The notes beneath the pieces were generated by a model that saw only the letters and a list, made by a program, of their open reading frames with translations, was not told the origin of the DNA and did no database searches. The translations under genes were made by a program, and so were the position numbers. This document shows, piece by piece, positions 19,240 through 49,379 of a stretch of DNA of 64,000 nt; positions within the stretch are counted from its first letter, which is position 1, and every line of letters begins with the position of its first letter. This DNA is from Hyalangium minutum (GTDB lineage: Bacteria > Myxococcota > Myxococcia > Myxococcales > Myxococcaceae): positions 62,001-126,000 of the forward strand of contig NZ_JMCB01000002.1 in assembly GCF_000737315.1 (NCBI RefSeq). Direction: 5' to 3'.

Positions 19240-25742
<6,503 letters not shown>

Positions 25743-25746
<4 letters not shown>

Positions 25747-26576
25747 GCAGCGTCACCCACAGCGCGGAGCTGGAGTCCCTCGAGGTGGAGCTGCTCCTCG
25801 AGGGCGTCCGGCGCCAGTATGGCTTTGACCTGCGCAACCACTCGCGGCCGCTGCTGTTGCGGCGGCTGCGGCGGCACCTGCGCGAGGAACGGCTGGAGAC
25901 CTTCTCCGGGCTGCAGGGCCGCGTGCTGCACGACCCGGAGGCGATGGAGGGCCTGCTGCGCGCCCTGGCCTGTCCTCCCGACACGCTCTTCTCCGACCCG
26001 TCCTTCTTCCAGGACTTCCGTGCGCGCGTGGTGCCCATGCTGCGCACCTACCCGTCCATCCGCGTGTGGCATGCGGGCTGCTACTCGGGCGAGGACACCT
26101 ACGCGCTGGCCATCCTGCTGATGGAGGAGGGGCTCTGGGGGCGCTGCCGCTTGTATGCCTCGGATGCCAGCGGTGGGCTGCTGTCGGACGCGCGCAACGG
26201 CGTGCTGCGGCTGCCTGGCGAGGAGGACGCGCGCAACTACCGCGAGGCTGGTGGCAAGCGCGCGCTGACGGACTACTACACCCGCGACGGGGACTGGGCG
26301 GTGCTGCACCCCAGCCTGCGCGAGGGCATCTTCTTCACCCAGCACAACCTGGCCACGGACGCCTCCTTCAACGAGTTCCAGGTCATCTTGTGCCGGGATA
26401 CGCTGCTGGCCTACAACCGGGCCCTGGCCAGCCGCGCCCATGAGCGCCTCTACGAGAGCCTCGTGCGGTTCGGCTTCCTGTGCCTGGGCCGCAAGGAGAC
26501 CTTGGCTCGCACGCCTTACGCGGCGGCGTACGAGGAGCTGGAAGGCACGGGCCGCGTGTACCGGAGGACCGCATGA
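25743..26576 (+). CDS. CheR-type methyltransferase homologue with degenerate active-site motifs
   Basis: [26 protein letters not shown] and VILCRD motifs. GTGA overlap with the kinase stop. Confidence 0.88.
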
Positions 26577-36185: not shown

Positions 36186-36614
36186 CTACTTGTTGATGGC
36201 CTGATTGGAGGGGCTGGACGCCGGGCCCGTCGCCGAGCGGCCCCGCTTGTAGAGGTCCGTCAGCTTCTTGGCCAGGTCCGCGCCCTGCACGCTCTTGGAG
36301 ATGTAGCCGTCCGCGCCGGACGACAGCGCCAGCGAGCGCAGCTTCGACTCGTCCGAGGCCGAGTACAGGATGAACTTGGTGCCCAGCGGCGCCTGCGCGC
36401 GCGCCAGAGACAGCACCTTGTCGCCGCTCAGCGCGGGAATGTTCACGTCCAGCAGCACCAGGTCCGGTGCCACCGAACGCACCAGGTTGGACACGCCCAG
36501 CGAGGAGCGGTGCGTGCGCACATCAAATCCGTAGGACGAGAGCGAGCGCTCCGCCAGTACAAGCTGATCCTGGTCGTCGTCCACAACGAGGACTCGGATC
36601 TTGGTTTCCGACAT
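36186..36614 (-). CDS. Single-domain response regulator
   Basis: [17 protein letters not shown] and ISK receiver residues. Confidence 0.92.
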   Translation of the reverse strand: MSETKIRVLVVDDDQDQLVLAERSLSSYGFDVRTHRSSLGVSNLVRSVAPDLVLLDVNIPALSGDKVLSLARAQAPLGTKFILYSASDESKLRSLALSSGADGYISKSVQGADLAKKLTDLYKRGRSATGPASSPSNQAINK

Positions 36615-36930
36615 TGTTTCCCCCAGGGGGCAGGGTTGTCGCTAGAGAGACTCTAATTATGACCTCGCTCCGCGTCAGGAAAGAAGGGGGGGGCGTGTAG
36701 GACCCTGCCGAAAGTGACAAGCGAGCAGGCAGTTTCCCGGGAAGTCGTGAGGCGCTCAACACCGGATATTGAGAACATCGTGAATTCCGAAGGGCCGCCT
36801 CGTGGATAAGCAGGCGCTCCCCACCTGCCCCGTCGTGTCGCCGAGAGGAATCGTGGCCACCGTGGCGGTGCTTTTCTCTCACCCGGTGGAGACGCATGGC
36901 ACGGCGCAAGACCCACCGGGGCAGGGCAGC

Positions 36931-38268
36931 TCAGCGGCGCTTCTGCGCGGCCCGCGGAGGACGCCGTCCCTTCGACACGCCCGGGTCGCTGGGAGCATCC
37001 GGGGCACTCGGAGTGCCCTGCAGCGGGAAGGTGAGGGTGAACACCGCGCCCCGCTCCGGGCGGTTGGCCGCGGTGATGGAGCCCCCCGCGCGCGCCATGA
37101 CGCCATAGGCCATGGACAGCCCCAGTCCCGTGCCCTGGCTGCCTTTGGTGGTGAAGAAGGGCCGGAAGATGCTGTGCAGGTTCTCCGGAGGAATGCCCGT
37201 GCCCTCGTCCTCCACGGTGACGACGACCTTGCCGCCCACCTCGGTGCCACGCACGCGGATGACGCCACTGTCCGGCATCGCGTCCCGGGCGTTGAGCAGC
37301 AGGTTGATGAAGACGTAGCGCAGGTCCGCCGCCACGCCGCTCACCGGCGGCAGCAGCGGGACATCCACCTCGATGCGCAGCGACAGGCCATGCCGCTTCG
37401 CCTGGTGCTCGAGGTCGCTGCGGGCGATCTCCACCGCCTCGCGGATGACGTCGGCCAGCTGCACCTGCTCGCCCGCGTGCTCGGGCCGCTGGCGCGCGAA
37501 GTCCTGGAGGTGGCGCAGGCGCGTGTGGGCGTCGCTGACGATGCGCACCATCGCGTCCATGTGGCCGCGGTGCCGCGTGGCGAACTCCGCGTCCCTCTCG
37601 ATGAGCTCCAGCCGGAGCTTCATGGCGTTCAGGGTGTTGTTGAGATCATGCGCCACGCCCGAGGCCAGCTCGCCCAGGGCGCGCAGGTGCTCCTGCTGGG
37701 ACAGGGTGGCACGCGCCTTCTCCAGCTCCTGCTCGGCCTGGACCTGGGCGGTGATGTCGTGGGCGAGCAGCAGCACGGCCTCCCTGGGACGCTCCCGGGG
37801 GTTGAGGCCCACCCGCTCTGTGCGCACCTCCAGCGTCCTCACGCCGGACTGCTCCTGGTAGCGCTCCACCACGGGGCCTCGCTCCCCCGAGGCCCTCAGC
37901 GCATGGGTGGCCTCCTCGGCCACCAGCCGCAGCGTGTTCCGGGCGGGGCCCTGCTGCTGGCCCTGGTGCAGGCGGAGCCACGGGCCGCTCCGGGTCAACG
38001 CGTGCCAGCGCGGATTGGCCAGCAGCACCACGCCATCACTCAGGAGCGCCACCGCGCTGGCGCTCGTCTCCAGCGCCCAGTTGGAGAGCCGGTAGGTGGT
38101 GATGTGCTCCTGGGAGCGCAGCTCCAGCTTGTGGACGAGCGTCTCGTGCTTGGAGAGGAGTTCCTGGTACTTGCGCAACAGCTCCGCTCGCATGCGCGTC
38201 GGAGGCTCGGCGGGGTGCTTGGCCCCGGGGGAGGTGGCAGGAGGGGGCGGACGGCGGCGCGGGCTCAT
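36931..38268 (-). CDS. Cytoplasmic PAS-HisKA-HATPase sensor kinase
   Basis: GVAHDLNN H-box, NLLLNARDAM, DEGTGI and GTGLGL. ATG 38268 is chosen because it overlaps an upstream stop (ATGA). Confidence 0.9.
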   Translation of the reverse strand: MSPRRRPPPPATSPGAKHPAEPPTRMRAELLRKYQELLSKHETLVHKLELRSQEHITTYRLSNWALETSASAVALLSDGVVLLANPRWHALTRSGPWLRLHQGQQQGPARNTLRLVAEEATHALRASGERGPVVERYQEQSGVRTLEVRTERVGLNPRERPREAVLLLAHDITAQVQAEQELEKARATLSQQEHLRALGELASGVAHDLNNTLNAMKLRLELIERDAEFATRHRGHMDAMVRIVSDAHTRLRHLQDFARQRPEHAGEQVQLADVIREAVEIARSDLEHQAKRHGLSLRIEVDVPLLPPVSGVAADLRYVFINLLLNARDAMPDSGVIRVRGTEVGGKVVVTVEDEGTGIPPENLHSIFRPFFTTKGSQGTGLGLSMAYGVMARAGGSITAANRPERGAVFTLTFPLQGTPSAPDAPSDPGVSKGRRPPRAAQKRR

Positions 38269-38405
38269 GCTCTCGAATGCTCCATGCGCGCGCGGTTCTC
38301 CTCCGGCAGCGCGGCCAGCTGGATGACGTCGTGGGCCACATAGAGCAGGCCCTGCATGTCCCTGCCATTGCCCCGAGGGGGCACCGCCTGAGCGCGCAGC
38401 GTCAC
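38265..38405 (-). other. Short ORF (30-46 aa) resembling a PAS C-terminal (PAC) strand pair, coupled to the kinase start
   Basis: VTLRAQAVPPRGNGRDMQGLLYVAHDVIQLAALPEENRARMEHSRA with high GC3. Its TGA overlaps the kinase ATG. Confidence 0.35.
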
Positions 38406-38502
38406 AGGTTCGTCCCCGGGGGCTCCAGGTGGCCATGGCCGGGCTGTTAACCCACGGCGTGGCGGGTCAGCAAGGCTGGAGACACCCTGCTAGGTAGGAT
38501 TC

Positions 38503-38520
38503 GACAAAACATGTTTTGTC
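38503..38520. promoter_or_regulatory. Perfect 18-bp AT-rich palindrome, candidate operator in a divergent promoter region
   Basis: GACAAAACATGTTTTGTC is its own reverse complement and is immediately followed by TATAAC. Confidence 0.65.
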
Positions 38521-38751
38521 TATAACCCGGAGCAGGCCGATGGGATGGGCTTCCATTCCGAACGCGGCTGGCCATCTACGGGATGCTCGATCGGATGGCT
38601 CGGACGGGGGGGGCGTATGCACAGGACGTCCTGGGTTCTCATCCTGAACACTGAGGGGCGGAGGTCCGGGGCGGTCCTTCCTTTGCTCGTCTCGGGTGCC
38701 GTTAGATGGAAGCCGTACTCAGGTCACGCCGCCGAATCACGGAGACACATC

Positions 38752-39429
38752 ATGGAGCCGAACTCCCGTATCCGGGTGGGCATTCTCGAAGACCAGCAGA
38801 TCTTCCTCGAGAGCCTGGTATCGATTCTGGAGAGCGCCGGCATAGAGGTGGTGGCTCAGTGCTCGAGCGTGGAGCAATTCCTGGCGCAGACGCGGCAGCA
38901 GCCACCGGACGTGGCGCTGGTGGACCTGCGGCTGGAGCACAAGGACGGGCAGCAGCTGGCGGATGGCTGCCGGGCGGTCGAGCTCCTGCATGACTTCTAC
39001 CCGAATGTGCGGCCGCTCGTGCTGTCGGCCAACCGGAACGCGGAGGAGGTGGAGCGCTGCTTCCGGGCTGGAGCGGCGGGCTACCTGTGCAAGCAGAACA
39101 TCGGCTGCGCGGAGCTGCTCGAGGCCGTGGGGCGGGTGGCCCGGGGCGAGCGACTGGTACCCTCGGAGCTGTTCCCTCACTCCATCGTGGAGGAAGAGAG
39201 CAACGCCTCGCGCAGCGTGCTCCACCAGCTCACGGCCCGGGAGCGCGAGGTGCTGGGCTTCATCGCCTCGGGCGCGGACAACCTGAAGATCGCCGTGTGC
39301 CTGGGCATCACCGAGCGCACGGTGAAGGCGCACATCACCAGCATCTACCGCAAGCTGGACGTAGAGAACCGCACGCAGATGGCGATGCTGGCCTGCCAGC
39401 TGGGCGTGGAGCGTCCGGCAACCGTCTGA
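38752..39429 (+). CDS. NarL/LuxR family response regulator
   Basis: LEDQ...ALVDLRL receiver and LTAREREVL...NLKIA...ITERTVKAHITSIYRKL HTH. ATG 38752 has a GGAGA RBS. Confidence 0.93.
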   Translation: MEPNSRIRVGILEDQQIFLESLVSILESAGIEVVAQCSSVEQFLAQTRQQPPDVALVDLRLEHKDGQQLADGCRAVELLHDFYPNVRPLVLSANRNAEEVERCFRAGAAGYLCKQNIGCAELLEAVGRVARGERLVPSELFPHSIVEEESNASRSVLHQLTAREREVLGFIASGADNLKIAVCLGITERTVKAHITSIYRKLDVENRTQMAMLACQLGVERPATV

Positions 39430-39609
39430 GGGTCATCTCTTCCTGGGACTTGAGGCCAATAGGTTCTTTCGCTGGGGAGCAGCACCTTGGAAGCAGCACG
39501 TTGGCGGGCCCCTCCTTCCCTGCCTTCTCCCGCCGCGTGCGCTGGGTCGTTTCCAGCGGGCCGGGGCGGGGATGCTTCCTCCTCCTGCCCCGGTCCGCTG
39601 CCAGCCTGC

Positions 39610-40632
39610 TCAAGGCTTCGTCGCGACGACGAGCTCGAAGGGGCCCGGCAGCACCTCGGGCGCTTTGAAGCCCAAGTCCTTCAGGGCCAGCAGGTAGTAC
39701 TCCACCTCGCGCAGGCGGCTCACGCAGCTGTCCACGCCCATGAGGAAGTAGGACCAGAAGAACTGCGCCGTCAGCCGCTCGGGCGTGCGGAACTCCTCGC
39801 AGATGAGGATGCGGCCACCGGAGGGCAGCGCCTCGTACGTGGCCTTCATCAGCGCGCGCGCCGTCTCCGCTGGCCAGTCGTGCAGCACACGCACGAAGGA
39901 GATCGCGTCATAGCCGCGCGGCAGCGGCTCCTTCAGGAAGTCTCCGCCCACGAAGCCCAGCCGCGCGCCCAGCTGGTGCTTCTCCCGCGTGCGCGCCACC
40001 AACGCCTCGGTGGCCGGCAAGTTGTACACGTCCACCTGGAGCTCCGGGTGCTGCTCCAGCAGGTGCGCCGCCAGCGAGCCGTCTCCGCCGCCCACCTCCA
40101 GCAGCTTCTGCCCCGGGCGCCACAGCGTGCCGCCGTGGGTGCGGAACACCTCGAGGATGGGGCCCAGCCCCGCGGCCATGCTGGCCTCGAAGCCCGCCAC
40201 CTGCTCGGTCGTCTGTGGCGGCCATTCGAAGTCCTTGGCCGGCATGCTCCGCTCCCCGCGCAGCACCTCCGGCAGGTGGCCGTGCAGCTCGCGCCAGCCG
40301 TACTTCTCCCGGTCCCGCTCCAGCGACTGCGGCCCCACCACCTTCTCCGCCGCCGCGCGCAGCCCCGGCACCGCCGTGTAGCGGGCCTCGAGCAGCGCGT
40401 CCGTCTTCTGCTCGCGCCGCACCAGCCCCAGGCTCTCCAGGCAGTCGAGGAACTTGTAGAGACGCCCCGGCACCATGCCGTACTTCTGGCTCAGCACCTC
40501 CAGCGTCACCGGGCCTGCCTCCAGCGCTTCCAGCAGGCCCAGCTTGTACGCCGTCTCCACCACGTCGATGGCGCGCGCTCCGTTGAAGAGCAGGTGCAGC
40601 AGCGCGCGGGGAGTGAGTTCCACGGTGCTCAT
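39610..40632 (-). CDS. SAM-dependent small-molecule methyltransferase (class II O/N/C-MT with dimerisation domain)
   Basis: N-terminal wHTH dimerisation domain, EVGGGDG, GGDFL and catalytic RVLHDW. ATGA overlap with the PLP enzyme. Confidence 0.9.
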   Translation of the reverse strand: MSTVELTPRALLHLLFNGARAIDVVETAYKLGLLEALEAGPVTLEVLSQKYGMVPGRLYKFLDCLESLGLVRREQKTDALLEARYTAVPGLRAAAEKVVGPQSLERDREKYGWRELHGHLPEVLRGERSMPAKDFEWPPQTTEQVAGFEASMAAGLGPILEVFRTHGGTLWRPGQKLLEVGGGDGSLAAHLLEQHPELQVDVYNLPATEALVARTREKHQLGARLGFVGGDFLKEPLPRGYDAISFVRVLHDWPAETARALMKATYEALPSGGRILICEEFRTPERLTAQFFWSYFLMGVDSCVSRLREVEYYLLALKDLGFKAPEVLPGPFELVVATKP

Positions 40633-41771
40633 GCCTTCTCCTTCCGCGCCTCGGCCACCAGCGCGTCCATGAAGCGGTCCACTTCTTCCAGCGTGTTGTA
40701 GAGGTGCGGCGCCACGCGCAGCATGCCCCGGTAGCTGCAGATGAAGCCGCTGGCCACCAGCCGCTGGGCCACCGCCGCGTCTCCGGGGAAGCGCAGTGCC
40801 ACCACGCCCGCGCGCCGCTCCTCCTGCCGCGGCGTCACCACCGTGAAGCCCGCCTCGTCTGCCCGCTCCATCACCCGCGCGGTGCACCGCAGGGAGTGTG
40901 CGCGAATCGTCGGCATCCCCACCGACGCCAGGATGTCCAACCCCACCCGGGACAGCTGCGAGGGCAGCACCGCCGGGGTGCCGCTGGCCATCCTTCGCGC
41001 CGTGGGGGCCCAGTCGCGCACCGGCCCGAAGGTGAGCGGGTTCTCTCCGGCGATCCACCCCGTGGCCGCGGGCCTCAGCGTGGGCAGCAGGGCCGGGCGC
41101 ACGTACAGGAAGGCGCTCTCGATGGAGCCACACATCCACTTGTGCGCGCCGCCAAGCAAGAAGTCCACGCCCAGCGCGCTCACGTCGATGGGGACGGCGC
41201 CCACCGACTGGTAGGCGTCCACGGCCACGAGCGCGCCCACCGCGTGCGCGCGCCGCACGACGGACGCCAGGTCCAGCATGGCGCCGGTGGAGGAGCTGGC
41301 GTGGGTGACGCTCACGAGCAGCGTGCGCTCATCGATGGCGGCGCACAGGCGCTCCTCGTCCATCCTCCCGTTCTCGGAGGGCACCACCACGGTCTCCGCG
41401 CCGTAGCGCTCGAAGCCCTTCCAGAGGAAGGGCACGGTGGGGAACTCCAGGTCCGTGGTCACCACGCGGCGGCGCTCGCCCTGGTAGTCGAAGCAAGTGC
41501 CCAGGCGCCCCAGCAGCGTGGTGAGGTTGGTGTCCGTCACCACGGAGCCGTCCGGCGCGCCGATGAAGCGCGCCACCGCGTCCATGTACCCGAGCCAGTC
41601 CGCCCACCAGCCCTCCCACGCCTCGTCACGCCAGTGCTGCAGCGTCTGCCCGTAGCGCTGGAGCACCGCCTCCATGCCCCGGGGGAACGCCCCCGTGGAG
41701 TTGCTGTTGAGGTACGTCACTTTCTCCAGCAGGGGGAACTCCGCCCGTACCGCCGAGAGCGTTGCGTCCAT
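40629..41771 (-). CDS. PLP-dependent class V enzyme, kynureninase-like
   Basis: YLNSNSTG, DAYQS, PLP lysine in AHKW, TGW and SGTP motifs; adjacent to a TDO-like gene. Confidence 0.75.
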   Translation of the reverse strand: MDATLSAVRAEFPLLEKVTYLNSNSTGAFPRGMEAVLQRYGQTLQHWRDEAWEGWWADWLGYMDAVARFIGAPDGSVVTDTNLTTLLGRLGTCFDYQGERRRVVTTDLEFPTVPFLWKGFERYGAETVVVPSENGRMDEERLCAAIDERTLLVSVTHASSSTGAMLDLASVVRRAHAVGALVAVDAYQSVGAVPIDVSALGVDFLLGGAHKWMCGSIESAFLYVRPALLPTLRPAATGWIAGENPLTFGPVRDWAPTARRMASGTPAVLPSQLSRVGLDILASVGMPTIRAHSLRCTARVMERADEAGFTVVTPRQEERRAGVVALRFPGDAAVAQRLVASGFICSYRGMLRVAPHLYNTLEEVDRFMDALVAEARKEKA

Positions 41772-41774
41772 ATG

Positions 41775-42995
41775 TCAGCGTCCTGAATCCTTGGAGGGGT
41801 GGTTCGCCGCGACGCCTTCCTGCAACTGCGCGGCGAAGCGCGAGGTGGGCGGCTCGGGCCGGGACCACGGATCATCCGACTCCGGCAGCGGCGGAGGCTC
41901 GGTGGGCCCCGGCGCCTGTCCGCGACGAGGCGGCTCGGGCTTGGACCAGGGGTCTTCGGCAGGCGCCTGTGGAGGCACGCTCGCGGCGGCCGTGGCGGAG
42001 GGATCCACCTGCGCCGCGGCCGCGGCCAGGGCCTGGGCGGTGCTCATCACCGGAGGAGCCGACTGCTGTGGCTCGGTGGGGGCCTTCGCCGCGCCCGGAG
42101 CCGGAAGGTCGGAGGCCGCCTCCAGCGCTGAGCTGATGGAGGCATGGCCCTCGGGAGCGGGGGGGCCCGCGGGGCTTGGGGAGACAGCGGGGTAGGAGCC
42201 CGAGGGCCGCTGGCTGCCGGGCGCGTAGCCACCGTCGCGCCGCCACGCGTTCGTCATCTCCGCGCGCACCTCCCACAGCTTGCGGAACAGCGGCAGCGTC
42301 ATGCGCCCCGCCAGCACCTGCGTGGGCAGGCCATCCAGCGCCTTGATGGAGCGGTCCACGCCGATGATGCGGCGGACCATCTGGTAGTGCGTGTAGAGCC
42401 ACGTCTGAAACAACTCGTCCAGGTCGACGAACTGCTCGCAGATGCGCTTCACGTCCTCCGAGTTGTACGCGCCGACCTTGTACACATCCAGCAGCCGCAG
42501 GTTGCGCCGCTGCAGCGTGCGATCCAACGCCGCCGCCAAGCCGTCCGCCGCCAGGCGCATGGCGTTGTAGCCCGGAGACTCCTGCCCGCTGCCGTTGCCC
42601 AGGCTGCGCCGGATGATTTGATACGTATCCGGCGTCATCGTCTCCAGGATGTTCATCTCCGCCACGAGACATTTCATGGCGCGCAGCATGCGCTCCAGCC
42701 GCCCGGTGGCTGGCCACAGCAGGTCTCCATCCATCTCCGCCACCACCTCGACCGCTTCCTGGGTGATGAGCTTGAGCCAGAGTTCCTGGGCCTGGTGAGT
42801 AATCTGAAACAAGAGCTCATCGTGATGGACGAGCTCCTCCGTGGAGGACTGGAGATGTAACAAAGTCCCTGTTTTCAAATAGACCTCGTAATCGAGGTCT
42901 CCCTTACCGACCCACTTCTTCAGCAAGGGATTGAACATGGGAGACGCCAGTTGATGGCGTAGCTTTTCAGCCTCACTGTAGTCAGGAGTTCGCAA
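41775..42995 (-). CDS. Tryptophan 2,3-dioxygenase family heme enzyme with a long Pro/Ala-rich C-terminal tail
   Basis: DYEVYL, HDELLFQITHQAQELWLK, MTP..Y..IR, GSGQESPGY and proximal His in THYQMVRRIIG. TTG start at 42995 is preceded by GGAGG; the ORF track uses 43010. Confidence 0.88.
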   Translation of the reverse strand: MRTPDYSEAEKLRHQLASPMFNPLLKKWVGKGDLDYEVYLKTGTLLHLQSSTEELVHHDELLFQITHQAQELWLKLITQEAVEVVAEMDGDLLWPATGRLERMLRAMKCLVAEMNILETMTPDTYQIIRRSLGNGSGQESPGYNAMRLAADGLAAALDRTLQRRNLRLLDVYKVGAYNSEDVKRICEQFVDLDELFQTWLYTHYQMVRRIIGVDRSIKALDGLPTQVLAGRMTLPLFRKLWEVRAEMTNAWRRDGGYAPGSQRPSGSYPAVSPSPAGPPAPEGHASISSALEAASDLPAPGAAKAPTEPQQSAPPVMSTAQALAAAAAQVDPSATAAASVPPQAPAEDPWSKPEPPRRGQAPGPTEPPPLPESDDPWSRPEPPTSRFAAQLQEGVAANHPSKDSGR

Positions 42996-43063
42996 GACAG
43001 GGCCCTCCAAAGGGCAGACATTTCAGAGAATTCAGACAGCCGAGTCAGTGAGACCGATTGAAC

Positions 43064-43465
43064 TCAGACAGGAGACACGGGAGTAGGGCGAGGCTTGTGA
43101 CGGAAGGACTCCAGCTTCCGCGCGAGCTCATCACCTTGAACACTCTTGGAGAGATATCCATCCGCGCCTGACGCCATGGCGAGCGAGCGCAGCTGGGTCT
43201 CATCCGAGGCTGAATACAGAATGAACTTGATGCCCGAGGGCGCTTGGGTGCGCGCCAGGGACACCACCTTGTCGCCCTTGAGGGCGGGGAAATTCACGTC
43301 AATCAGGACGACGTCCGGCACGCTGTCCCGGATGCGGGTGGAGACACCCAGGGCGGAGATGTGCGTCTCCACCTCGAACCCGTGAGCGCGCAGCGAGCGC
43401 GCCACCAAGTCCAAGAGGTCCGGGTCGTCATCCACCACGAGCACGCGGAGCTTGCCGTCAGCCAT
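43064..43465 (-). CDS. Single-domain response regulator (paralogue of 36186-36614)
   Basis: [17 protein letters not shown] and LSK. Overlaps the kinase stop by 8 nt. Confidence 0.92.
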   Translation of the reverse strand: MADGKLRVLVVDDDPDLLDLVARSLRAHGFEVETHISALGVSTRIRDSVPDVVLIDVNFPALKGDKVVSLARTQAPSGIKFILYSASDETQLRSLAMASGADGYLSKSVQGDELARKLESFRHKPRPTPVSPV

Positions 43466-46361
43466 GGCTCTTCCCCAGGTGCTTGCGGATGGTGTCCAGG
43501 AGCTGATCGCGGTCCAGCGGCTTGGTGAGGTACGCGTCGCAGCCGGCCTTGAGGGCCCGGTCCTGGTACTCGCGGCCCGCGTGGGCGGTGACGGCGATGA
43601 CGGGGACCTTGGAGATGGCGGCCGGCAGGGCGCGGATGCGACGGGTGGCCTCCCAGCCGTCCACGCGCGGCAGGGACAGGTCCATCAGCACCAGGTCCGG
43701 CGTCTCCTTCTGCGCGCGCTCCAGGCCCAGCTCACCGTCCTCGGCCTCGAGCAGCTCGTAGTTGTTGCCGAGGTAGCGGCGGACGATGTCGCGGTTCTGC
43801 GGGTTGTCCTCGACGTAGAGGATGCGGGGCATGCGCCCGCTGTTGGCCGCGCGCTTCTGCAGCAGCAGCGCCTTGGCTTGGCCAATCACGTCGTCGATGG
43901 CGTGGCCGCCCTTGCGCACGAAGGCGATGAGCCCGTTGCGCAGCGTGCTCTGCTCCTCGCTGGTCAGGTCCTTGCCGGTGAGCACCACCACCGGCATGTG
44001 GAGGTTCTCCGCGCGCAGCCGCCGCAGCACCTCGAAGCCGTCGAGGTTGGGCATCATGAGGTCCAGCACCACGAGGATGGGCGGGGAGACGCGGGCCTTG
44101 AGCAGGGCGTCCTCGCCGCTGTGGGCCTCGGAGGTGGAGAAGCCGGCGCGGCGCAGGCTGCGGCTGACGAGCTCGCGGGTGCCCGCGTCGTCATCCACCA
44201 CCAGCACCTCGCCGGTGCCCAGGGCCTGGGTGCCCAGGGTGCGCGTCACCACCTCCACCAGCCGGTCCGGCTCGATGGGCTTGACGAGGTACTCGCACGC
44301 GCCCAGCGAGTAGCCGCGCGCGCGCTGCTCCTCCACGGACACGAGGATGACGGGGATGGTGGACAGGTGCGGCTCGCTCTTGAGCTGGCTGAGCACGCTC
44401 CAGCCGTCCAGCCGGGGCAGGTGGATGTCCAGGATGATGGCCTGGGGCTTCACCTCGCGCGCCAGCCGCAGCGCGTTCACGCCGTCGCCGGCGGGCACCA
44501 CCTTGAAGCCCGCGGGCTCCAGCTGGCCCACCACCAGCTGCTGCATGAGCAAGTCGTCGTCCACCACCAGCACGGTGCTGCCGGCCGCCAGCGGGGCCAG
44601 CTTCGCCGCCACGTCCTCCACGGACACCGCCTGCTCCGGCTGCTCTCCATTGCTGGAGGCGGACGGCGCGGGGGCCGGGCTCTCCAGCACGCCCGCGAGC
44701 CGCACGGTGAAGGTGGAGCCGCGGCCCAGCACGCTGGTGACGTTGACGTTGCCGCCGAGCACCTTGCTCAGCTCGCGGACAATCGCCAGACCCAGGCCGG
44801 TGCCGCCCACCTTGCGCGTGTGCGAGCCGTCCACCTGGCGGAACTTCTCGAAGATGTGCTGCACCTGATCGGGCGGAATGCCGACGCCGGTGTCCTCCAC
44901 CGACATCACCGCCTCGTTGCCCTCGGCGCGCAGGGCCAGCGCCACCTCTCCGGACTCGGTGAACTTGGCGGCGTTGCTCAGCAGGTTGAGCATGATCTGC
45001 CGCAGCTTCAGCGCGTCCGTCTGCAGGAACCGCGCGCGCTCTTCGATGTTGAGCGTGAGCGCCACGTCCTTGCCCTTGAGGTACTCGCGCACCGTGGCCT
45101 GGCACTCCTCGGCCAGCTCCTGCACGTCCACGCGCTCGGTGACGACTTCCACGCGGCCCGCTTCGATCTTCGACAGGTCCAGAATGTCGTTGATGAGCGC
45201 CAGCAGCGTCTTGGCGTTCGTCTTCACGACGTTCAAGTCACGCCGGCCGTGGGCGGTGAGGCGGCTGCCCTCCTCGCGCATCAGCAGGTCGCAGTAGCCG
45301 ATGATGCCGTTGAGCGGGGTGCGAATCTCGTGGCTGAAGTTGGCGAGGAACTCGCTCTTGAGGCGGGCGGCGGCCTCGGCCTCGCGGGCGCGCTCCTCCT
45401 CGTTGCGCTTGGAGATGGCCAGGTCCGTGGCCAGCTTGTCCAGGTCCTCGTTCTGCTGGCGGATGATCTCCATCTGCAGCGCGCGCTGCTGGTAGCTGGC
45501 CAGCGAGCGGGCGGAGACGGACTTCGTGCGCTTGAGCTCATCGAGGTTCTCGGCCAGCTTCTTGTTGGCCGCCTGGAGCGCCGCCTCGTTGCGCTTGCGC
45601 TCGGTGATGTCCTCGGTGACGCCCATCACATAGAGGACCTCACCCTGCTCATTGGTGAGGGGGATCTTCCGGGTGCCGAACTGGCGATCCTCGCTGACGA
45701 CGCGCGCGACCTCCTCGAAGGATTTGATCTGCTTGGAGGCGGCCACCTCGCGATCAATGGCGACGAAGGCGTCGGCCTGCTCCTTGGGGAAGTAGTCGTG
45801 ATCCAGCTTCCCGAGCAGGCCCTCCTTGGTGGTCTGAAACGAGTCCGTGAACGTCTTGTTGACGACCTTGAGCCGCAGCTCCTTGGCATCCTTGACGAAG
45901 AGGATGAAGGGCAGGCTGTCGATGATCTTGTTGAGCAGCCAGACCGTGCGCTGGAGCTCCTCCCCCTGCTCGTGCTGGTGTCCGCGCGCGAGGATCAGCC
46001 CCAGCCGGCCCAGCTGCTCTTCGGTGAGGTAGTCGCTGGCCCCGGCTTGCATGGCGGCCGCCAGTGTCTCCTCGTTCCACTGGCGTGACAGCACCACGAA
46101 GGGCGTACCGTGGCCCTTTTGCTTCCAAGTGGCGTGAATCTGCTCCAGGGAGAGCGCCCCCGGCTCCGTGCCGAACACCACCAGAGACCAGGGCTTCGCC
46201 AACGCAGCAGCGAGCGCGTCGGCGCTGGAGACCCGCTCCACCTCGTGCCGCGGCGACACTCGGCGCAGTGCGTTTAGAACCTGCTCGGTCTCGCGTTCGC
46301 TGGTGTGGAGGAGGATGCGGTGGGTAGGGCTTTCGGTTTGCGCGAGGGGCGAGAGGCTCAT
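43458..46361 (-). CDS. Cytoplasmic hybrid histidine kinase (pseudo-REC-PAS-coiled coil-HisKA-HATPase-3xREC)
   Basis: FSHEIRTPLN, NLLSNAAKF and GTGLGL, plus three C-terminal receivers with DDD/ED...D...K. TGATG overlap with the FIST gene. Confidence 0.93.
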   Translation of the reverse strand: MSLSPLAQTESPTHRILLHTSERETEQVLNALRRVSPRHEVERVSSADALAAALAKPWSLVVFGTEPGALSLEQIHATWKQKGHGTPFVVLSRQWNEETLAAAMQAGASDYLTEEQLGRLGLILARGHQHEQGEELQRTVWLLNKIIDSLPFILFVKDAKELRLKVVNKTFTDSFQTTKEGLLGKLDHDYFPKEQADAFVAIDREVAASKQIKSFEEVARVVSEDRQFGTRKIPLTNEQGEVLYVMGVTEDITERKRNEAALQAANKKLAENLDELKRTKSVSARSLASYQQRALQMEIIRQQNEDLDKLATDLAISKRNEEERAREAEAAARLKSEFLANFSHEIRTPLNGIIGYCDLLMREEGSRLTAHGRRDLNVVKTNAKTLLALINDILDLSKIEAGRVEVVTERVDVQELAEECQATVREYLKGKDVALTLNIEERARFLQTDALKLRQIMLNLLSNAAKFTESGEVALALRAEGNEAVMSVEDTGVGIPPDQVQHIFEKFRQVDGSHTRKVGGTGLGLAIVRELSKVLGGNVNVTSVLGRGSTFTVRLAGVLESPAPAPSASSNGEQPEQAVSVEDVAAKLAPLAAGSTVLVVDDDLLMQQLVVGQLEPAGFKVVPAGDGVNALRLAREVKPQAIILDIHLPRLDGWSVLSQLKSEPHLSTIPVILVSVEEQRARGYSLGACEYLVKPIEPDRLVEVVTRTLGTQALGTGEVLVVDDDAGTRELVSRSLRRAGFSTSEAHSGEDALLKARVSPPILVVLDLMMPNLDGFEVLRRLRAENLHMPVVVLTGKDLTSEEQSTLRNGLIAFVRKGGHAIDDVIGQAKALLLQKRAANSGRMPRILYVEDNPQNRDIVRRYLGNNYELLEAEDGELGLERAQKETPDLVLMDLSLPRVDGWEATRRIRALPAAISKVPVIAVTAHAGREYQDRALKAGCDAYLTKPLDRDQLLDTIRKHLGKSHG

Positions 46362-47524
46362 CAGTTGGATCCGAACGCCAGCACGGTCAGCGTGGTGTTG
46401 ATGTGGAACCCCGAGTAGATCTCGAAGTGCACATTCATTCCAGCCGCCGTCGGCGCGGAGCGCAAGGTCTCCGCCAATTCGGGAACCTTACCTGTAGCGC
46501 TCGCGTACCACATACGCCCACCGCAATGAAACAGGAGGACAGCCTGGGGGTTGTGTACCCGCCTGGGCAGCTCCTCCGTGAAGAAGGACTTCGTCATTCC
46601 GGCCATGTCGCCAATCTTCATGAGCTCCAGCTCGGAGCCCTCCTCCAGCAAGTTGGCGAAAAGAATGGAGTTATCCTCGAGGATGGGCTTCCAGGGGGCG
46701 CGGATGAAGTACTCGCGTCCCACGCGGAGTGCGGTCGGGCGGACGGCGAAGCCCTTGGGGGTTCCGAACTCCAGCTCACTCGGCTGGCACCCGAGCAGGT
46801 CCGCGTAGCGCTGGGCCGCCGGCTTGCCATCAATCTCCAGGGCGCGGGTGTGCGTCTCGTCGACCTTGGTAATCGTCATCCGCTCGCCGGTGGGGATGTA
46901 CCAGTGCGAGCGGAGGGCGGCGAACGGGGCGTTGGTGCGGAACAGGGCCACGAGCACCGCGTCGGTGGCGACTTCACCGTCCACGTGGAGCTGCGAGGAC
47001 TGCTTGGAGATGTCGCGGTTGTCGTCGCTGGCGCCGCCGCCCACGAGCACCAGCGTCTGGTTCTTCTCGAGGATGCCCAGCAGCAGCTCTTCCTTCTTGT
47101 AGCGGAAGCCGTCGTCAATCACGAGGCCCACGTACTTGCGCGGATCCAGATCCGCCTGCCGCACGCCGAGCTCCTCGCAGGCCTTCTTGATGGCGTTGCC
47201 GCCCGCGGAGACGGCATCCAGGCTCAGGCCGGTGCCCAGGCCCACGCCCACGTCGAAGTCCCCGTAGAGGGCGCCGAGCACCACGGAGCCGGAGTGGATG
47301 CCGGTGTTGTCCAGCTCACCGGCGGTGGTGGCGCCCACCAGGCGGCAGCCCTTGGGGAGCCGCTCGCGCACGGCGCGGTTGAGCGCGCTCTGGTCGCGCT
47401 CACGCGAGGCGAACATCATCACCAGCTTGGGGGTGATGCTGCCCAGCTGCTTCATCAAGTCCTCCGCGGCCGCGACGGGCTCCTTCTCGGTGCTGCGAGC
47501 CGTCTGCATCTTCACTTGCGCCAT
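46361..47524 (-). CDS. FIST N/C domain signal-transduction protein (NosP-like)
   Basis: LVGATTAGE, VGGGASDD, LEIDGKPA, LFHCGGR and INTTL FIST motifs. ATG 47524 has a GGAGG RBS. Confidence 0.88.
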   Translation of the reverse strand: MAQVKMQTARSTEKEPVAAAEDLMKQLGSITPKLVMMFASRERDQSALNRAVRERLPKGCRLVGATTAGELDNTGIHSGSVVLGALYGDFDVGVGLGTGLSLDAVSAGGNAIKKACEELGVRQADLDPRKYVGLVIDDGFRYKKEELLLGILEKNQTLVLVGGGASDDNRDISKQSSQLHVDGEVATDAVLVALFRTNAPFAALRSHWYIPTGERMTITKVDETHTRALEIDGKPAAQRYADLLGCQPSELEFGTPKGFAVRPTALRVGREYFIRAPWKPILEDNSILFANLLEEGSELELMKIGDMAGMTKSFFTEELPRRVHNPQAVLLFHCGGRMWYASATGKVPELAETLRSAPTAAGMNVHFEIYSGFHINTTLTVLAFGSN

Positions 47525-47549
47525 GGAGGACCTCCGGGTGTGGGAGCGG

Positions 47550-49379
47550 CTAGAGGCCGCTCTGAGGGTGATTAGTGTGGCAGGTACTGGTGCACTGCTG
47601 GAAGGATTCGCTGCCGCCCCCCACATACATGCTCTTGAGGGGGCCGAATTGGGCCTGGTGCTGGGGGGACCACGTCTTGTGGCACGAGAAGCATGCAGCC
47701 TTGCTGGTGCGCTGGATGCTGGAGCGGTTCAGGTGGCAGCTGCTGCACTGAGCCAGGTTGGTATCAAACCGGTCCGAGCGCGAGTGGATGAAGTGCACGC
47801 GCACGAAGATGGGGCCCTCCAGCTCGAAGGAGAGGGGGGCGTGGCAGCCGTTGCAGGCGGCTCGGTTGTCGTTGCCGTGGAGCACGCTGGCCAGCTCGCC
47901 GCCCTTGCTGTGGCAGCTGTTGCACGGGCCGGTGGTGGGCACCGGGGTGGTCTGCTGCCGGGTGCCGACCTGGATTTCCAGGGTGCGGCTGTAGGGCATG
48001 TCCTCGCCCAGGTACACACGGCGGCCCTTCACCGTGACGAGGTAGGTGCCAGGCACGGCGTTGGCGGGCAGCTGGGTGGTCCACGTGTCGCTGACGGGCG
48101 CAGCCCAGCCGGCGTGGGTGGGATCGAACGCACCGCCGAACAGGTTCGGGCCCTTCGGGATGGTCTGCACCTGGGAGAAGAGGCCGTCACGCTCGAAGGT
48201 GGCCGGCGTCTGGACGGTAGGCCCCAGGAAGTCGTTGAGGTCGAGGATGGAGCGGATGGGCTGGATTCTCTGGGCCGGCCCGATGATCTGCGTCATCAGC
48301 ATGCGCTCGCGGTGCTTCCTGCGGTAATACGTGGCCGACGGATCGAAGAACGCCCGATAGTACTGGATGCCCGGCTCATTGTTGCCGAAGACAACCTCAT
48401 TATACGTCGGAAGCGAGCCCTGGGGGTGGAGCCTGCGGCCGGAGCCATCCTTCAGGGTGAGACGGAAGGTGATGGAGGTGCCCGGGGCGTAGGTACCGTC
48501 CGCGCGGGGCGGAGTGACGGGCACCATGTCGATGGAGAAGCCGTAGTCATACGCGGGGCGTGCCACCTGCTCCACGGGGATGGTGTACGGGGCGCTGGGG
48601 CGCAGGGACCAGCGCAGGCGGAGCGCCTTGGTGCGCGAGTCGAGCTTCAGCAGCTTCTCCTTGCACGGGGTGCGGGCGTTGCGCAGCTCCACCAGCGCCT
48701 CCTCCATGAAGTTGTTGGCGCCCGCGCAGCTCTCCAGCGAGCGGCAGTCATACGTCCACTGGATGGCGCGGAAGCGGCGGACGAAGAAGTCGTCGTCATC
48801 CCGGCGCTGGTCGTTGGCGCCCGCGTTGAGCTCCAGGGGGCGGCCGAGGGTGCGGCCCTGGGCGTCCACCTGCTCCACGATGAAGATGCTGGGCAGGTCC
48901 ATCCACAAGGCGTTCCGGTAGAAGCGGCGGCGCTTGTAGCCCTCGGGGCCCGGAGACAGCTCGAACTCCTCGTCCACCTGCCGCACGCCAAGCCACCCCA
49001 GGCCGGCGAACAACCCGTTGCGGCGCAGGCCGTCCACGCCTTCGTCCCGGGTGGCCGTCACCGAGCTGCGCAGGTCGATCTGGTTGATGAAGAAGGTCTG
49101 CCCCGCCTTCACGCGCAGCGGGATGCCCTCGCCGTCCTCCACCTCGAGCGCCAGGCTCACGGCCTTGTCGGTCGACGGGTCCGAGCGGCGCTCGTCGTCG
49201 GCGTCCTCCACGGCCTGGGACTGAGTGCTCAGCTCGGAGGGGGCGCTGGCGCCCGCCGGCTCTGCGCCGCACGCGGCCATCAGCGGGGTGAGTGAAGCAA
49301 GCAGGAGCACCACACCGAGCGACCCCACCTGTCGGGTGGTCTCGACCTTCATTGCCAGCGGCGCCGTCGACTTACGCAT
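47550..49379 (-). CDS. Multiheme (five-motif) c-type cytochrome lipoprotein
   Basis: Lipobox-like MAAC. C-terminal CNSCH, CNGCH, CSSCH, CFSCH and CTSTCH, preceded by a large beta-rich region. Confidence 0.85.
   Translation of the reverse strand: MRKSTAPLAMKVETTRQVGSLGVVLLLASLTPLMAACGAEPAGASAPSELSTQSQAVEDADDERRSDPSTDKAVSLALEVEDGEGIPLRVKAGQTFFINQIDLRSSVTATRDEGVDGLRRNGLFAGLGWLGVRQVDEEFELSPGPEGYKRRRFYRNALWMDLPSIFIVEQVDAQGRTLGRPLELNAGANDQRRDDDDFFVRRFRAIQWTYDCRSLESCAGANNFMEEALVELRNARTPCKEKLLKLDSRTKALRLRWSLRPSAPYTIPVEQVARPAYDYGFSIDMVPVTPPRADGTYAPGTSITFRLTLKDGSGRRLHPQGSLPTYNEVVFGNNEPGIQYYRAFFDPSATYYRRKHRERMLMTQIIGPAQRIQPIRSILDLNDFLGPTVQTPATFERDGLFSQVQTIPKGPNLFGGAFDPTHAGWAAPVSDTWTTQLPANAVPGTYLVTVKGRRVYLGEDMPYSRTLEIQVGTRQQTTPVPTTGPCNSCHSKGGELASVLHGNDNRAACNGCHAPLSFELEGPIFVRVHFIHSRSDRFDTNLAQCSSCHLNRSSIQRTSKAACFSCHKTWSPQHQAQFGPLKSMYVGGGSESFQQCTSTCHTNHPQSGL

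Follow-up and report, generated by a model that had tools for sequence, protein, structure and literature searches.

A run of seven minus-strand genes (49379 to 39610) in a 64,000-nucleotide stretch of the Hyalangium minutum genome (the window; contig NZ_JMCB01000002.1, positions 62,001 to 126,000) is identified from its synteny, consecutive UniProt accessions and locus tags in the literature as the counterpart of Myxococcus xanthus MXAN_0735–0730, which includes rodK, rokA and socE. The reading that best accounts for the locus as a whole, and which we hold with modest confidence, is that a sensory phosphorelay and a tryptophan-oxygenase-type enzyme cassette are joined here as two modules. This places SocE, whose restraint of the starvation response has long lacked an explanation, in a small-molecule cassette linked to a sensor kinase. 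The first-pass annotation of this DNA is partly supported; the signalling system that it took to be undescribed contains, in its kinase, REC and TDO-like genes, the orthologues of rodK, rokA and socE.

Table 1. Genes and intergenic element of the Hyalangium locus (positions in the window)
Feature	Position	Strand	Basis and relationship
Probable lipoprotein with C-terminal multihaem c-type cytochrome module, 609 aa	47550..49379	-	orthologue of MXAN_0735
FIST_N + FIST_C protein, NosP-like, 387 aa	46361..47524	-	Pfam; orthologue of MXAN_0734
Soluble hybrid histidine kinase, 967 aa	43458..46361	-	Pfam; orthologue of RodK (MXAN_0733)
Single-domain response regulator, 133 aa	43064..43465	-	Pfam Response_reg; orthologue of RokA (MXAN_0732)
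REC/TDO-like spacer, 68 nt	42996..43063	-	sequence and alignment of 12 loci
TDO/HDAO-superfamily haem protein	41775..42995	-	Pfam Trp_dioxygenase; orthologue of MXAN_0731 = socE
Kynureninase-like fold-type-I (class V) PLP enzyme, 380 aa	40629..41771	-	Pfam Aminotran_5 + KYNU_C
Class I small-molecule SAM methyltransferase, 340 aa	39610..40632	-	Pfam; orthologue of MXAN_0730
NarL/LuxR-type response regulator (REC + GerE)	38752..39429	+	Pfam; convergent with methyltransferase gene
Histidine kinase (HisKA + HATPase)	36931..38268	-	Pfam, gene call
Second single-domain REC, paralogue of RokA orthologue	36186..36614	-	Pfam

All seven genes of the run are present at the positions in Table 1, with GC3 values of 0.83–0.95, the expected high-GC codon signature, and the domain calls and near-gapless junctions described earlier hold up against Pfam and the sequence. 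In order along the strand, the junctions read from the sequence are a gap of 25 nt (cytochrome/FIST), overlaps of 1 nt (FIST/hybrid kinase, TGATG) and 8 nt (hybrid kinase/REC, ATGGCTGA), a gap of 68 nt (REC/TDO-like, counted from the TTG start at 42995), a gap of 3 nt (TDO-like/kynureninase-like) and an overlap of 4 nt (kynureninase-like/methyltransferase, ATGA). A conserved GGAGGG lies 7 nt ahead of the TTG, and the aligned spacers share this ribosome-binding site, together with a CTGACTCGGCTGTCT element that is kept within Hyalangium. No terminator-like site was found inside the run by sequence scan, and the spacer yielded neither a sigma-70-like nor a terminator-like site. We infer co-transcription of the seven genes, and an internal promoter could lie within the spacer. 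Insertion mutants of rodK are reportedly viable, although socE depletion is said to stop growth, a difference that speaks for a separate promoter of socE.

The adjoining NarL/LuxR-type regulator and paralogous REC named by the first-pass annotation were both recovered. The regulator is a conserved neighbour in Myxococcaceae, found at 27 loci and split into two ORFs in DK1622. The second REC, MXAN_0726 by gene order, is a conserved neighbour at 38 loci and shares 64% identity with the operon REC and 77% with its M. xanthus counterpart. The histidine kinase between them, previously called a PAS kinase, carries only HisKA and HATPase domains, its PAS_8 match falling below threshold (14.9 versus 21.8 bits), and is present at only 14 loci.

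The assignment to the M. xanthus locus rests on several concordant observations. In DK1622 (locus L086), the genes stand in the same order, their products carry the sequential accessions Q1DEC2, Q1DEC4, Q1DEC5, Q1DEC6 and Q1DEC7, and identities to the Hyalangium proteins range from 65 to 81%. Additionally, the anchors MXAN_0724 (Ser/Thr kinase) and MXAN_0736 (histidine kinase) agree with the DK1622 gene count, and the chromosomal position of rodK, 33 degrees, agrees with this locus. MXAN0733 is rodK and MXAN0732 is rokA (supplement of PMC2875238), and socE is MXAN_0731 (PMC4320627, PMC11980068), an equation that comes from two papers of one laboratory; the cluster of the MXAN_0731 protein holds no database entry named SocE. 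Since the locus is orthologous to MXAN_0735–0730 and MXAN_0731 is socE, the TDO-like protein is assigned as the SocE orthologue. We found no paper in the searchable literature that connects SocE with the cassette or with a dioxygenase fold. In published work, the timing of aggregation and sporulation, and the coupling between them, are under the control of RodK and RokA; rodK and socE fall into the same early down-regulated developmental groups. According to papers citing Crawford & Shimkets, SocE inhibits the stringent response, which in turn represses SocE.

Within the sensory module, the cytochrome lipoprotein begins with a signal sequence ending in LMAAC and carries four CXXCH motifs and one CX3CH motif, all kept in 42 of 42 orthologues. 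Its Pfam matches lie just under cutoff (Cytochrom_c3_2, 24.5 versus 25 bits), no solved structure was found among its homologues, and it is 65% identical to "hypothetical protein MXAN_0735". The FIST protein matches Pfam FIST (E 1.6e-33) and FIST_C (E 4.9e-13), is 81% identical to its M. xanthus orthologue and aligns end to end with the NCBIfam NosP model, at 170.7 bits versus a cutoff of 450; residues His180, His207, His333, His374 and Cys334 are conserved across 41 orthologues. The hybrid kinase consists of a degenerate N-terminal receiver-like region followed by PAS, HisKA, HATPase and three REC domains, and scores 210 against the NahK-family model (cutoff 400). The operon REC is 71% identical to M. 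xanthus Q1DEC5 versus 61% to its downstream paralogue.

The SocE orthologue, 68% identical to M. xanthus Q1DEC6, comprises a catalytic domain of ~265 aa and, unlike the M. xanthus protein, a long Pro/Ala-rich tail (~140 aa). It matches Pfam Trp_dioxygenase (E 5e-25), reaches 120.7 bits against TIGR03036 (cutoff 390.7) and has a true TDO as its best PDB sequence match. Residues Y24, Y27, L28, F51, H55, Y113, R117, L120, S124, G125 and H240 of XcTDO are kept, and the haem ligand and the tryptophan-contact residues are invariant in the family; for the substrate contacts, namely the Tyr/Arg clamp, the distal His and the indole pocket, this holds across three phyla. Judged from these features, SocE is a member of the tryptophan-dioxygenase haem-enzyme superfamily. 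The GTGGS loop of TDO, which binds the amine group of the substrate and is believed to promote delivery of the second oxygen atom, is replaced by (K)ALDG. In the AlphaFold2 model (pLDDT 84), the best fold matches are MarE (TM 0.74–0.77) and then XcTDO (0.57–0.68). Because the GTGGS loop is replaced and the nearest fold is the monooxygenase MarE, ring opening by SocE is not assured.

The kynureninase-like enzyme finds P. fluorescens kynureninase (1qz9) as its best PDB sequence match (E 1.3e-37, versus 5e-23 for cysteine desulfurases) and scores 96 bits against TIGR01814 (cutoff 246). In this family, the equivalents of K227, D201, F129, W256, G281 and R375 are invariant and W64 and T282 have equivalents in 54 of 55 members, whereas D132V and Y226H/G are family-wide changes relative to kynureninase. 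The earlier view that the TDO-like and kynureninase-like enzymes act together gains from a natural fusion of the two (P0451), which occurs in FIST-kinase context on two contigs; at L087 and L088, there is a 17-nt overlap between the REC and fusion genes. Sixteen Myxococcota loci, in Myxococcus, Pyxidicoccus, Archangium and Cystobacter, show a clean absence of the PLP gene, with the TDO-like and methyltransferase genes still in place; among them is that of M. xanthus, where socE was studied.

The methyltransferase combines a Methyltransf_2 domain with an N-terminal dimerisation/winged-helix domain (Pfam), and 74 sequences show no variation in its VGGGDG motif, the catalytic histidine of LHDW or an EE pair. 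M. xanthus Q1DEC7, an "O-methyltransferase family protein", shares 73% identity with it. The fold neighbours of its AlphaFold2 model (pLDDT 92.7), RedM, DsyB, BchU, ASMT, MfnG and SibL, together cover N-, S-, C- and O-methylation, and the regiochemistry cannot be inferred from such modelled neighbours. We consider it unlikely that the cassette follows a MarE-type route, in which a PLP aminotransferase and a C-methyltransferase acting on indolepyruvate would give beta-methyl-tryptophan, which the haem protein would convert to a 2-oxindole with no ring opening. The fold ranking, the shortened helical region shared with MarE, the missing GTGGS and a weak match of the methyltransferase to 2-ketoarginine methyltransferase fit this route. 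However, the PLP enzyme keeps the kynureninase-specific KYNU_C domain and the W64 and G281-T282 equivalents, the haem-protein family has NGSG and ALDG in place of the MarE loops DATG and SLGGR, no conserved cupin epimerase lies nearby, and the nearest methyltransferase relatives are not keto-acid C-methyltransferases.

All three enzymes and the FIST protein fall below NCBIfam equivalog cutoffs, and none is a canonical TDO, kynureninase or NosP; the loop replacement and the MarE-like fold of the haem protein are in keeping with this. It is quite improbable that the enzymes serve tryptophan catabolism of the ordinary kind, or a kynurenine pathway of the anthranilate/NAD type, with the two-component genes as mere neighbours and an unrelated methyltransferase. 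The conserved TDO and kynureninase catalytic residues and the best PDB sequence matches would suit this reading, but the scores lie far under the KynA and KynU cutoffs, the GTGGS loop is replaced, and no conserved formamidase was found in the flanks of the cassette loci. Moreover, the methyltransferase gene is present at 71 of 71 evaluable loci, overlapping the preceding gene; the PLP gene is lost at 16 loci with its two partners kept; and the published socE phenotype in M. xanthus is regulatory and growth-essential (PMC4320627, PMC11980068). The window contains no NRPS or PKS, as noted before, and no kynurenine 3-monooxygenase, none of which is conserved in the flanks of 80 loci. The suggested analogy with 4-methyl-3-hydroxyanthranilate formation is incomplete, the 3-hydroxylase and formamidase being missing. 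A free methylated anthranilate, the product proposed earlier, would not be universal because the PLP gene is missing in four genera, unless a housekeeping kynureninase substitutes.

FIST-kinase genes lie directly upstream of the cassette in 40 of 45 evaluable Myxococcota loci, and the linkage reaches Kofleriaceae, Sandaracinus and unclassified lineages at ~50–60% protein identity. Recurrence of the arrangement at this frequency, down to ~50% identity, is far beyond chance. The conserved synteny anticipated by the first-pass annotation is thus found for the FIST, kinase, REC, TDO-like and methyltransferase genes, with the kynureninase-like gene missing at 16 loci. At all 27 actinomycete loci, and at one cyanobacterial locus, the TDO-like gene is likewise followed by PLP and methyltransferase genes; the flanks of these cassettes vary, and no FIST or kinase gene lies nearby. 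By this distribution, the three enzymes are best described as a separate, mobile cassette.

The same distribution bears on two further explanations. One, which we regard as distinctly improbable, is that a precursor made by the cassette, for instance a methylated (hydroxy)anthranilate, feeds a secondary-metabolite assembly line encoded elsewhere, as for actinomycin and sibiromycin. It draws on the resemblance to TDO, kynureninase and SibL/AcmL-type methyltransferase sets, with SibL among the fold neighbours, and on an AMP-binding enzyme, a thioesterase and a flavin amine oxidase beside the cassette in some Nocardia loci. Against it stand the missing NRPS, PKS and kynurenine 3-monooxygenase genes, the variability of actinomycete flanks, and the fixed partner in Myxococcota, which is a phosphorelay and not a biosynthetic cluster. 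The other, very unlikely, is that SocE is mainly a haem-based sensor or binding protein for O2, NO or redox state in a cytochrome-FIST-SocE chain of three haem proteins. Three predicted or candidate haem proteins in one run, the regulatory M. xanthus phenotype and a PLP partner dispensable in several genera speak for such a role, but the substrate-contact residues are invariant across three phyla, SocE is accompanied always by the methyltransferase and usually by the PLP enzyme, to which it is fused in one lineage, and the actinomycete cassettes have no sensor genes nearby.

Taken together, we propose that the locus joins two modules. The first would be a sensory phosphorelay made of the periplasmic multihaem cytochrome lipoprotein, the cytoplasmic NosP-like FIST protein, the soluble hybrid kinase RodK and its partner RokA; the second, an ancient, horizontally mobile cassette of the SocE haem oxygenase, a kynureninase-type PLP hydrolase and a Methyltransf_2 methyltransferase. 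As for the putative substrate, product, methylation site and signalling role, SocE would most likely bind L-tryptophan or a close indole amino acid via the Tyr/Arg carboxylate clamp and distal His and oxidise the pyrrole ring with O2; the kynureninase-like enzyme would then cleave the resulting aryl-ketone amino acid to alanine and an anthranilate-type acid, and the methyltransferase would add a methyl group to a heteroatom, either in the product or in an intermediate. Where the PLP gene is missing, the pathway would halt earlier or a housekeeping kynureninase would step in. Because the cassette is fixed immediately downstream of FIST-RodK-RokA in Myxococcota, the phosphorelay and the synthesis of a metabolite dependent on tryptophan, O2 and SAM probably belong to a single unit that controls growth versus development. 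The published genetics are consistent with this: SocE holds back the RelA stringent response, the timing of aggregation and sporulation depends on RodK, and both genes are switched off as starvation sets in.

Among known systems, the M. xanthus locus is the closest, sharing gene-for-gene orthology, gene order and the overlaps of 8 nt between kinase and REC genes and of 4 nt into the methyltransferase gene. In contrast to Hyalangium, it has no kynureninase-like gene and possesses a dienelactone-hydrolase gene after the methyltransferase and the upstream PAS-GAF kinase MXAN_0736, both missing from Hyalangium. In NosP-NahK-type NO sensing, a FIST haem protein controls a co-encoded hybrid kinase, and the Hyalangium run likewise has a FIST_N + FIST_C gene directly upstream of, and overlapping, a hybrid kinase gene, with a full-length NosP model match. 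However, both proteins score under the respective cutoffs, haem/NO binding is putative, and we know of no counterpart of the cytochrome lipoprotein or of the downstream cassette in described NosP systems. With KynA/KynU and the actinomycin/sibiromycin sets, the cassette has two folds in common, arranged in the same order and with conserved residues at the catalytic sites and in the substrate pockets, and its Methyltransf_2 partner is related in fold to SibL; it differs in its sub-cutoff scores, replaced GTGGS and changed D132 and Y226 equivalents, and in lacking formamidase, 3-hydroxylase and NRPS. MarE (PDB 8vyy, 9ca3), a haem monooxygenase that forms a 2-oxindole in maremycin biosynthesis, has the solved fold nearest to that of the TDO-like protein, with a helical region likewise shortened relative to TDO, and shares the distal His, the Arg clamp and an indole pocket formed with the neighbouring subunit. 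Yet the two are only 22–24% identical in sequence and differ in the DATG and SLGGR loops, and whereas MarE is partnered by an aminotransferase and a cupin, the Hyalangium protein is partnered by a kynureninase-like enzyme.

In the window, whose G+C is ~68%, seven consecutive minus-strand genes stand out by codon-position G+C; their products are listed in the table. In the direction of transcription, 25 nt separate the cytochrome-like and FIST genes, the FIST and kinase genes meet at TGATG, the kinase and receiver genes overlap by 8 nt (ATGGCTGA), gaps of 68 and 3 nt precede and follow the TDO-like gene, and the kynureninase-like gene overlaps the methyltransferase gene at ATGA; these junctions agree with those described in the first-pass annotation. 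The 68-nt gap, between the receiver (REC) and TDO-like genes, assumes a TTG start at 42995, which we adopt because a GGAGGG motif, conserved across twelve related loci, stands 7 nt before it. A consensus scan, uninformative at such high GC, found no terminator-like hairpin inside the run, and a consensus promoter scan of the window is likewise uninformative for a high-GC genome. The cytochrome-like protein carries four CXXCH and one CX3CH haem motifs, kept in 42/42 orthologues examined, and its N-terminus looks like a lipoprotein signal. The run is followed downstream by a NarL/LuxR regulator gene, which is convergent, and by genes for a kinase and a second receiver, the last sharing 64% identity with the receiver of the run; the kinase had been read as a PAS kinase, but its PAS match is sub-threshold. 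The other large ORFs of the window encode an RND pump, PurL, an H+-pyrophosphatase and several big two-component proteins. Additionally, a CheR-type methyltransferase gene follows the 2221-aa HAMP kinase gene with a 4-nt overlap.

Features of the seven-gene run and further features in the window (window coordinates)
Feature	Position	Strand	Basis
Cytochrome-like protein	47550-49379	minus	matches slightly below Pfam cutoffs
FIST_N + FIST_C	46361-47524	minus	Pfam
PAS, HisKA, HATPase + three receiver domains	43458-46361	minus	Pfam
Single receiver	43064-43465	minus	Pfam
Trp_dioxygenase (TDO-like)	41775-42995	minus	Pfam
Aminotran_5 + KYNU_C (kynureninase-like, PLP)	40629-41771	minus	Pfam
Methyltransf_2 + dimerisation domain	39610-40632	minus	Pfam
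Pro/Ala-rich C-terminal tail of the TDO-like protein	41775-42200		
2221-aa hybrid kinase: ~dozen HAMP repeats, GAF, three receivers	19081-26576		

The M. xanthus DK1622 region (L086, CP000113 822,589-843,437) has the same gene order as the window, and its proteins share 65-81% identity with their window counterparts. Exact-sequence look-up identifies the M. xanthus cytochrome as 'hypothetical protein MXAN_0735' (Q1DEC2), and the receiver, the TDO-like protein and the methyltransferase as Q1DEC5, Q1DEC6 and Q1DEC7, respectively. The two receivers pair as orthologues between the window and M. xanthus, the RokA orthologue of the window being 71% identical to M. xanthus RokA versus 61% to the paralogue. 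In a published table, the tags MXAN0733 and MXAN0732 stand for rodK and rokA, and MXAN0731 and MXAN0734 are entered as conserved hypotheticals (PMC2875238); two papers from one laboratory assign socE to MXAN_0731 (PMC4320627, PMC11980068). The reported position of MXAN_0733, at 33 degrees or ~838 kb, falls inside L086, and counting the called genes from MXAN_0724, a Ser/Thr kinase, up to MXAN_0736, a histidine kinase, gives an exact fit. No entry named SocE occurs in the database cluster of the protein, and the protein collection contains none of the ORFs in other frames of the M. xanthus socE region, which were looked up in case SocE had been called in one of them. Judged by best-match orthology, gene order and locus-tag anchors, the window locus is the rodK-rokA-socE orthologous locus. 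The first-pass annotation had proposed an undescribed signalling system; its observation of the gene run stands and its interpretation is borne out in part, while the term 'undescribed' has to be dropped, since the components overlap the known genes RodK, RokA and SocE.

The NarL/LuxR regulator is split in DK1622 (L086 13046-13708) into 66 aa of GerE and 150 aa of REC, whereas further M. xanthus genomes encode it as one intact protein of 220 aa; the split suggests that a frameshift arose in the laboratory strain or lies in its sequence. An additional histidine kinase of PAS-GAF type, MXAN_0736, is encoded in M. xanthus between the SNF2 helicase and cytochrome genes (1407-3252 in L082/L086), at which position Hyalangium has a 75-aa ORF only; MXAN_0736 is reported to be up-regulated in development and to matter for the germination of spores.

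SocE is a predicted member of the TDO haem-oxygenase superfamily. Specifically, the TDO-like protein reaches the Pfam family-level cutoff (89 vs 34.9) and misses the KynA equivalog cutoff TIGR03036 (120.7 vs 390.7 bits). In the alignment, equivalents of the XcTDO proximal haem ligand H240, distal histidine H55 and carboxylate clamp Y113/R117 are present, as are those of the indole pocket (Tyr24, Tyr27, Leu28, Phe51, Leu120, Ser124 and Gly125), and all of these residues, the distal histidine included, are invariant across 48 TDO-like family members. Such invariant substrate residues, together with a natural fusion to a PLP domain, argue against SocE acting as a purely sensory haem protein, a reading that we consider very improbable. 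In the searchable literature, we found no paper tying SocE to a dioxygenase fold, and one review takes SocE as a myxobacterial, lineage-specific novelty.

The TDO-like protein lacks ~50 residues of the TDO helical insert, and two loops are rearranged in its family: the GTGGS (JK) loop of TDO becomes S-I/V-K-A-L-D-G, of which ALDG is invariant, and the PSSG loop becomes NGSG. The mono- versus dioxygenase outcome has been partly ascribed to a pair of loops that read PASG and GTGGS in TDO and DATG and SLGGR in MarE, and the Thr of the GTGGS loop binds the substrate amine in TDO (PMC11904535). NGSG/ALDG represents a third loop type in the haem-dependent aromatic oxygenase superfamily, and with this third combination the reaction outcome is therefore not readable from homology. 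The AlphaFold model of the TDO-like protein (pLDDT 84) has as its top fold match MarE, a monooxygenase that forms 2-oxindoles, with TM-scores of 0.74-0.77 versus 0.57-0.68 for Xanthomonas TDO. This fold agrees with a MarE-like beta-methyl-Trp route; the loops of the same haem protein and the kynureninase-type PLP enzyme encoded beside it, however, clash with such a route and make it unlikely.

The tails of the SocE orthologues are variable. Those of Hyalangium and Stigmatella end in a Pro/Ala-rich stretch of ~140 aa with two copies of a DPWS(K/R)PEPP motif, and those of Myxococcus and Corallococcus are short with a GGGCPM(A/M)H motif, some Corallococcus tails being His-rich; MarE too has a C-terminal Cys, close to the neighbouring active site (PMC11904535). 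Three proteins of the representative library (P0468, P0477 and P0494) contain more distant short TDO-like domains with 31-42% identity, fused among them to a ferredoxin-reductase-type module, an ATP-grasp domain and another class V PLP domain; by their sequences, they point to a wide, largely uncharacterised TDO-superfamily branch.

The kynureninase-like PLP enzyme misses the KynU equivalog cutoff TIGR01814 (96.1 vs 246.4 bits) and contains a KYNU_C Pfam domain above cutoff (46.8 vs 27). Its PDB sequence matches give kynureninase 1qz9 an E value of 1.3e-37 versus 5e-23 for cysteine desulfurases, and by this comparison kynureninase is clearly the solved protein closest to it. Counted over 55 PLP family members in P. 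fluorescens kynureninase numbering, the equivalents of Lys227, Asp201, Phe129, Trp256, Gly281 and Arg375 are invariant and those of Trp64 and Thr282 are kept in 54, whereas the Asp132 equivalent is Val in 46 members and otherwise Ile, Ala or Thr, and the Tyr226 equivalent is His or Gly in 54. In kynureninase, such residues include the PLP lysine, the Asp to the pyridine N, the stacking Phe and the Arg for the carboxylate; Trp64 and Thr282 are kynurenine-specificity residues, with Gly281-Thr282 and Trp64 forming the kynurenine pocket.

For the methyltransferase, the best NCBIfam model is BchU (95 vs a cutoff of 276), the best PDB sequence match is 22ow, SibL is only a mid-ranking relative, and the database names of homologues are generic. 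Its SAM motif and the LHDW histidine are invariant. Among its fold neighbours, RedM is an N-methylating enzyme, DsyB acts on S, BchU and SibL act on C, and ASMT and MfnG act on O, so that the model and fold search do not tell O-, N-, S- and C-methylation apart. In several genomes (M. xanthus, Micromonospora), orthologues of this methyltransferase are mislabelled 'ArsR family transcriptional regulator', apparently because of the N-terminal winged-helix dimerisation domain.

The FIST protein scores below cutoff against the NosP model NF041558 (170.7 against the equivalog 450), and the NosP-like architecture of FIST_N plus FIST_C and an adjoining hybrid kinase are both present. Its conserved His and Cys are candidate haem-related residues, and a homologue search returned close Cystobacterineae orthologues only, among the matches listed. 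A search for FIST, NosP or kynureninase in Myxococcus found nothing relevant in the searchable literature.

The cassette of TDO-like, PLP and methyltransferase genes is linked to the phosphorelay well beyond the window. Among 45 Myxococcota loci with enough upstream sequence, cytochrome-FIST-kinase(-REC) genes stand directly upstream of the cassette on the same strand in 40; one Labilithrix locus has a divergent cytochrome-FIST-kinase, and four loci (a Sorangium, two Nannocystis and a Labilithrix MAG) are without it upstream. The synteny in relatives on which the first-pass annotation had staked its proposal is thus retained. The arrangement reaches Kofleriaceae, Sandaracinus and unclassified lineages, whose proteins are 50-66% identical to those of the window. 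In 16 loci, belonging to Myxococcus, Pyxidicoccus, Archangium and Cystobacter, the PLP gene is cleanly absent and the methyltransferase gene follows the TDO-like gene within ~75 nt or less. Plain Trp catabolism is at odds with this loss of the PLP gene in several genera, with a methyltransferase that is always present, with enzyme scores below the equivalog cutoffs and with a known phenotype that is regulatory, and we hold it to be quite unlikely. In Myxococcus, Pyxidicoccus, Corallococcus and Citreicoccus, a gene for a dienelactone-hydrolase-family alpha/beta hydrolase, absent from the Hyalangium window, stands after the methyltransferase gene (12078-12866 in L082/L086; L011-L034), and its product could be a pathway esterase or formamidase.

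A pattern scan with one genome per species yielded 80 loci, with which the window proteins were then compared by tblastn. The TDO-like gene is followed by PLP and methyltransferase genes in 27 of 27 evaluable actinomycete loci, from genera including Nocardia, Micromonospora, Streptosporangium, Jiangella, Kribbella, Microlunatus and Streptomyces, and in the same order in one cyanobacterial locus (Aulosira), with frequent gene overlaps. No FIST, kinase or cytochrome gene was found near these 27 actinomycete cassettes or that of Aulosira, and the actinomycete flanks are variable, with an AMP-binding enzyme and a thioesterase beside the cassette in a few Nocardia. We regard the cassette, from its gene arrangement, as an independent, mobile unit. 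In 13 actinomycete loci (L040 8310-9899 and 12 others), among them loci of Nocardia, Jiangella and Microlunatus, a flavin-containing amine oxidase gene adjoins the cassette and may encode, in these bacteria, a fourth enzyme of the pathway.

A scan of 1.8 billion representative proteins revealed a natural fusion of 650 aa, whose TDO-like and kynureninase-like domains are 50% and 58% identical to those of the window, respectively. The fusion protein is encoded on two independent metagenome contigs, which argues that the two enzymes act together. On these contigs, a RodK-like kinase gene (59% identical) is followed by REC, fusion and methyltransferase genes, the REC and fusion genes overlapping by 17 nt and the fusion and methyltransferase genes by 4 nt. 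A kynurenine 3-monooxygenase, a formamidase and an NRPS consumer are absent from the window and are not conserved in the flanks of the 80 loci; the earlier statement that the window has no NRPS/PKS holds among its ORFs. Precursor supply to an NRPS, which has no conserved consumer, hydroxylase or formamidase to point to, is accordingly quite improbable.

In myxobacteria, the decision between growth and development has SocE and RodK among its classic regulators. Beyond the observed modules, orthology, linkage, conserved active-site residues and fusion, we propose that SocE would use O2 to oxidise Trp or a closely related indole amino acid, that the PLP enzyme would hydrolyse the aryl-ketone product to alanine and an anthranilate-type acid, and that the methyltransferase would methylate a heteroatom. 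In loci without the PLP gene, the route may be shorter, or a housekeeping kynureninase may substitute. The relay would set production of the metabolite, or the metabolite would feed back on the relay; taken with the published phenotypes, the fixed place of the cassette after FIST-RodK-RokA suggests a single unit of growth/development control. Reportedly, rodK mutants are viable whereas SocE depletion arrests growth, so that socE probably also has its own promoter, for which the 68-nt spacer between the REC and TDO-like genes is the obvious candidate place. Because the start of MXAN_0730 overlaps the stop of socE, SocE depletion may also have lowered MXAN_0730. It is possible, though well short of probable, that SocE and its partners convert Trp, O2 and SAM into a small methylated Trp-derived metabolite that signals 'sufficiency', inside the cell or by diffusion, and restrains the RelA stringent response, with FIST-RodK-RokA, possibly informed by the cytochrome, controlling its production or sensing it.

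No explanation of how SocE restrains the stringent response, or of the stimulus of RodK, was found in the searchable literature. If the proposal is true, it would provide a molecular mechanism for SocE, a ligand or output for RodK, and a new reaction type of the haem-dependent aromatic oxygenase superfamily that actinomycetes share. Placing SocE in the TDO superfamily and joining the cassette to FIST-RodK-RokA makes the questions of SocE mechanism and RodK sensing testable, turning them into concrete biochemical ones of substrate, product, haem and methylation. Compared with known systems, the locus differs from the actinomycin/sibiromycin 4-methyl-3-hydroxyanthranilate cassette, whose hydroxylase, formamidase, SibL/AcmL-type C-methyltransferase and NRPS have no counterparts here. 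It differs likewise from MarE, whose DATG and SLGGR loops are not found in the TDO-like family and whose beta-methyl-Trp supply genes (cupin, aminotransferase) are not conserved near the TDO-like gene. The new element is the recognition of SocE as an enzyme of the TDO superfamily, encoded in a cassette that is both conserved and mobile and is coupled physically to a FIST-kinase relay.
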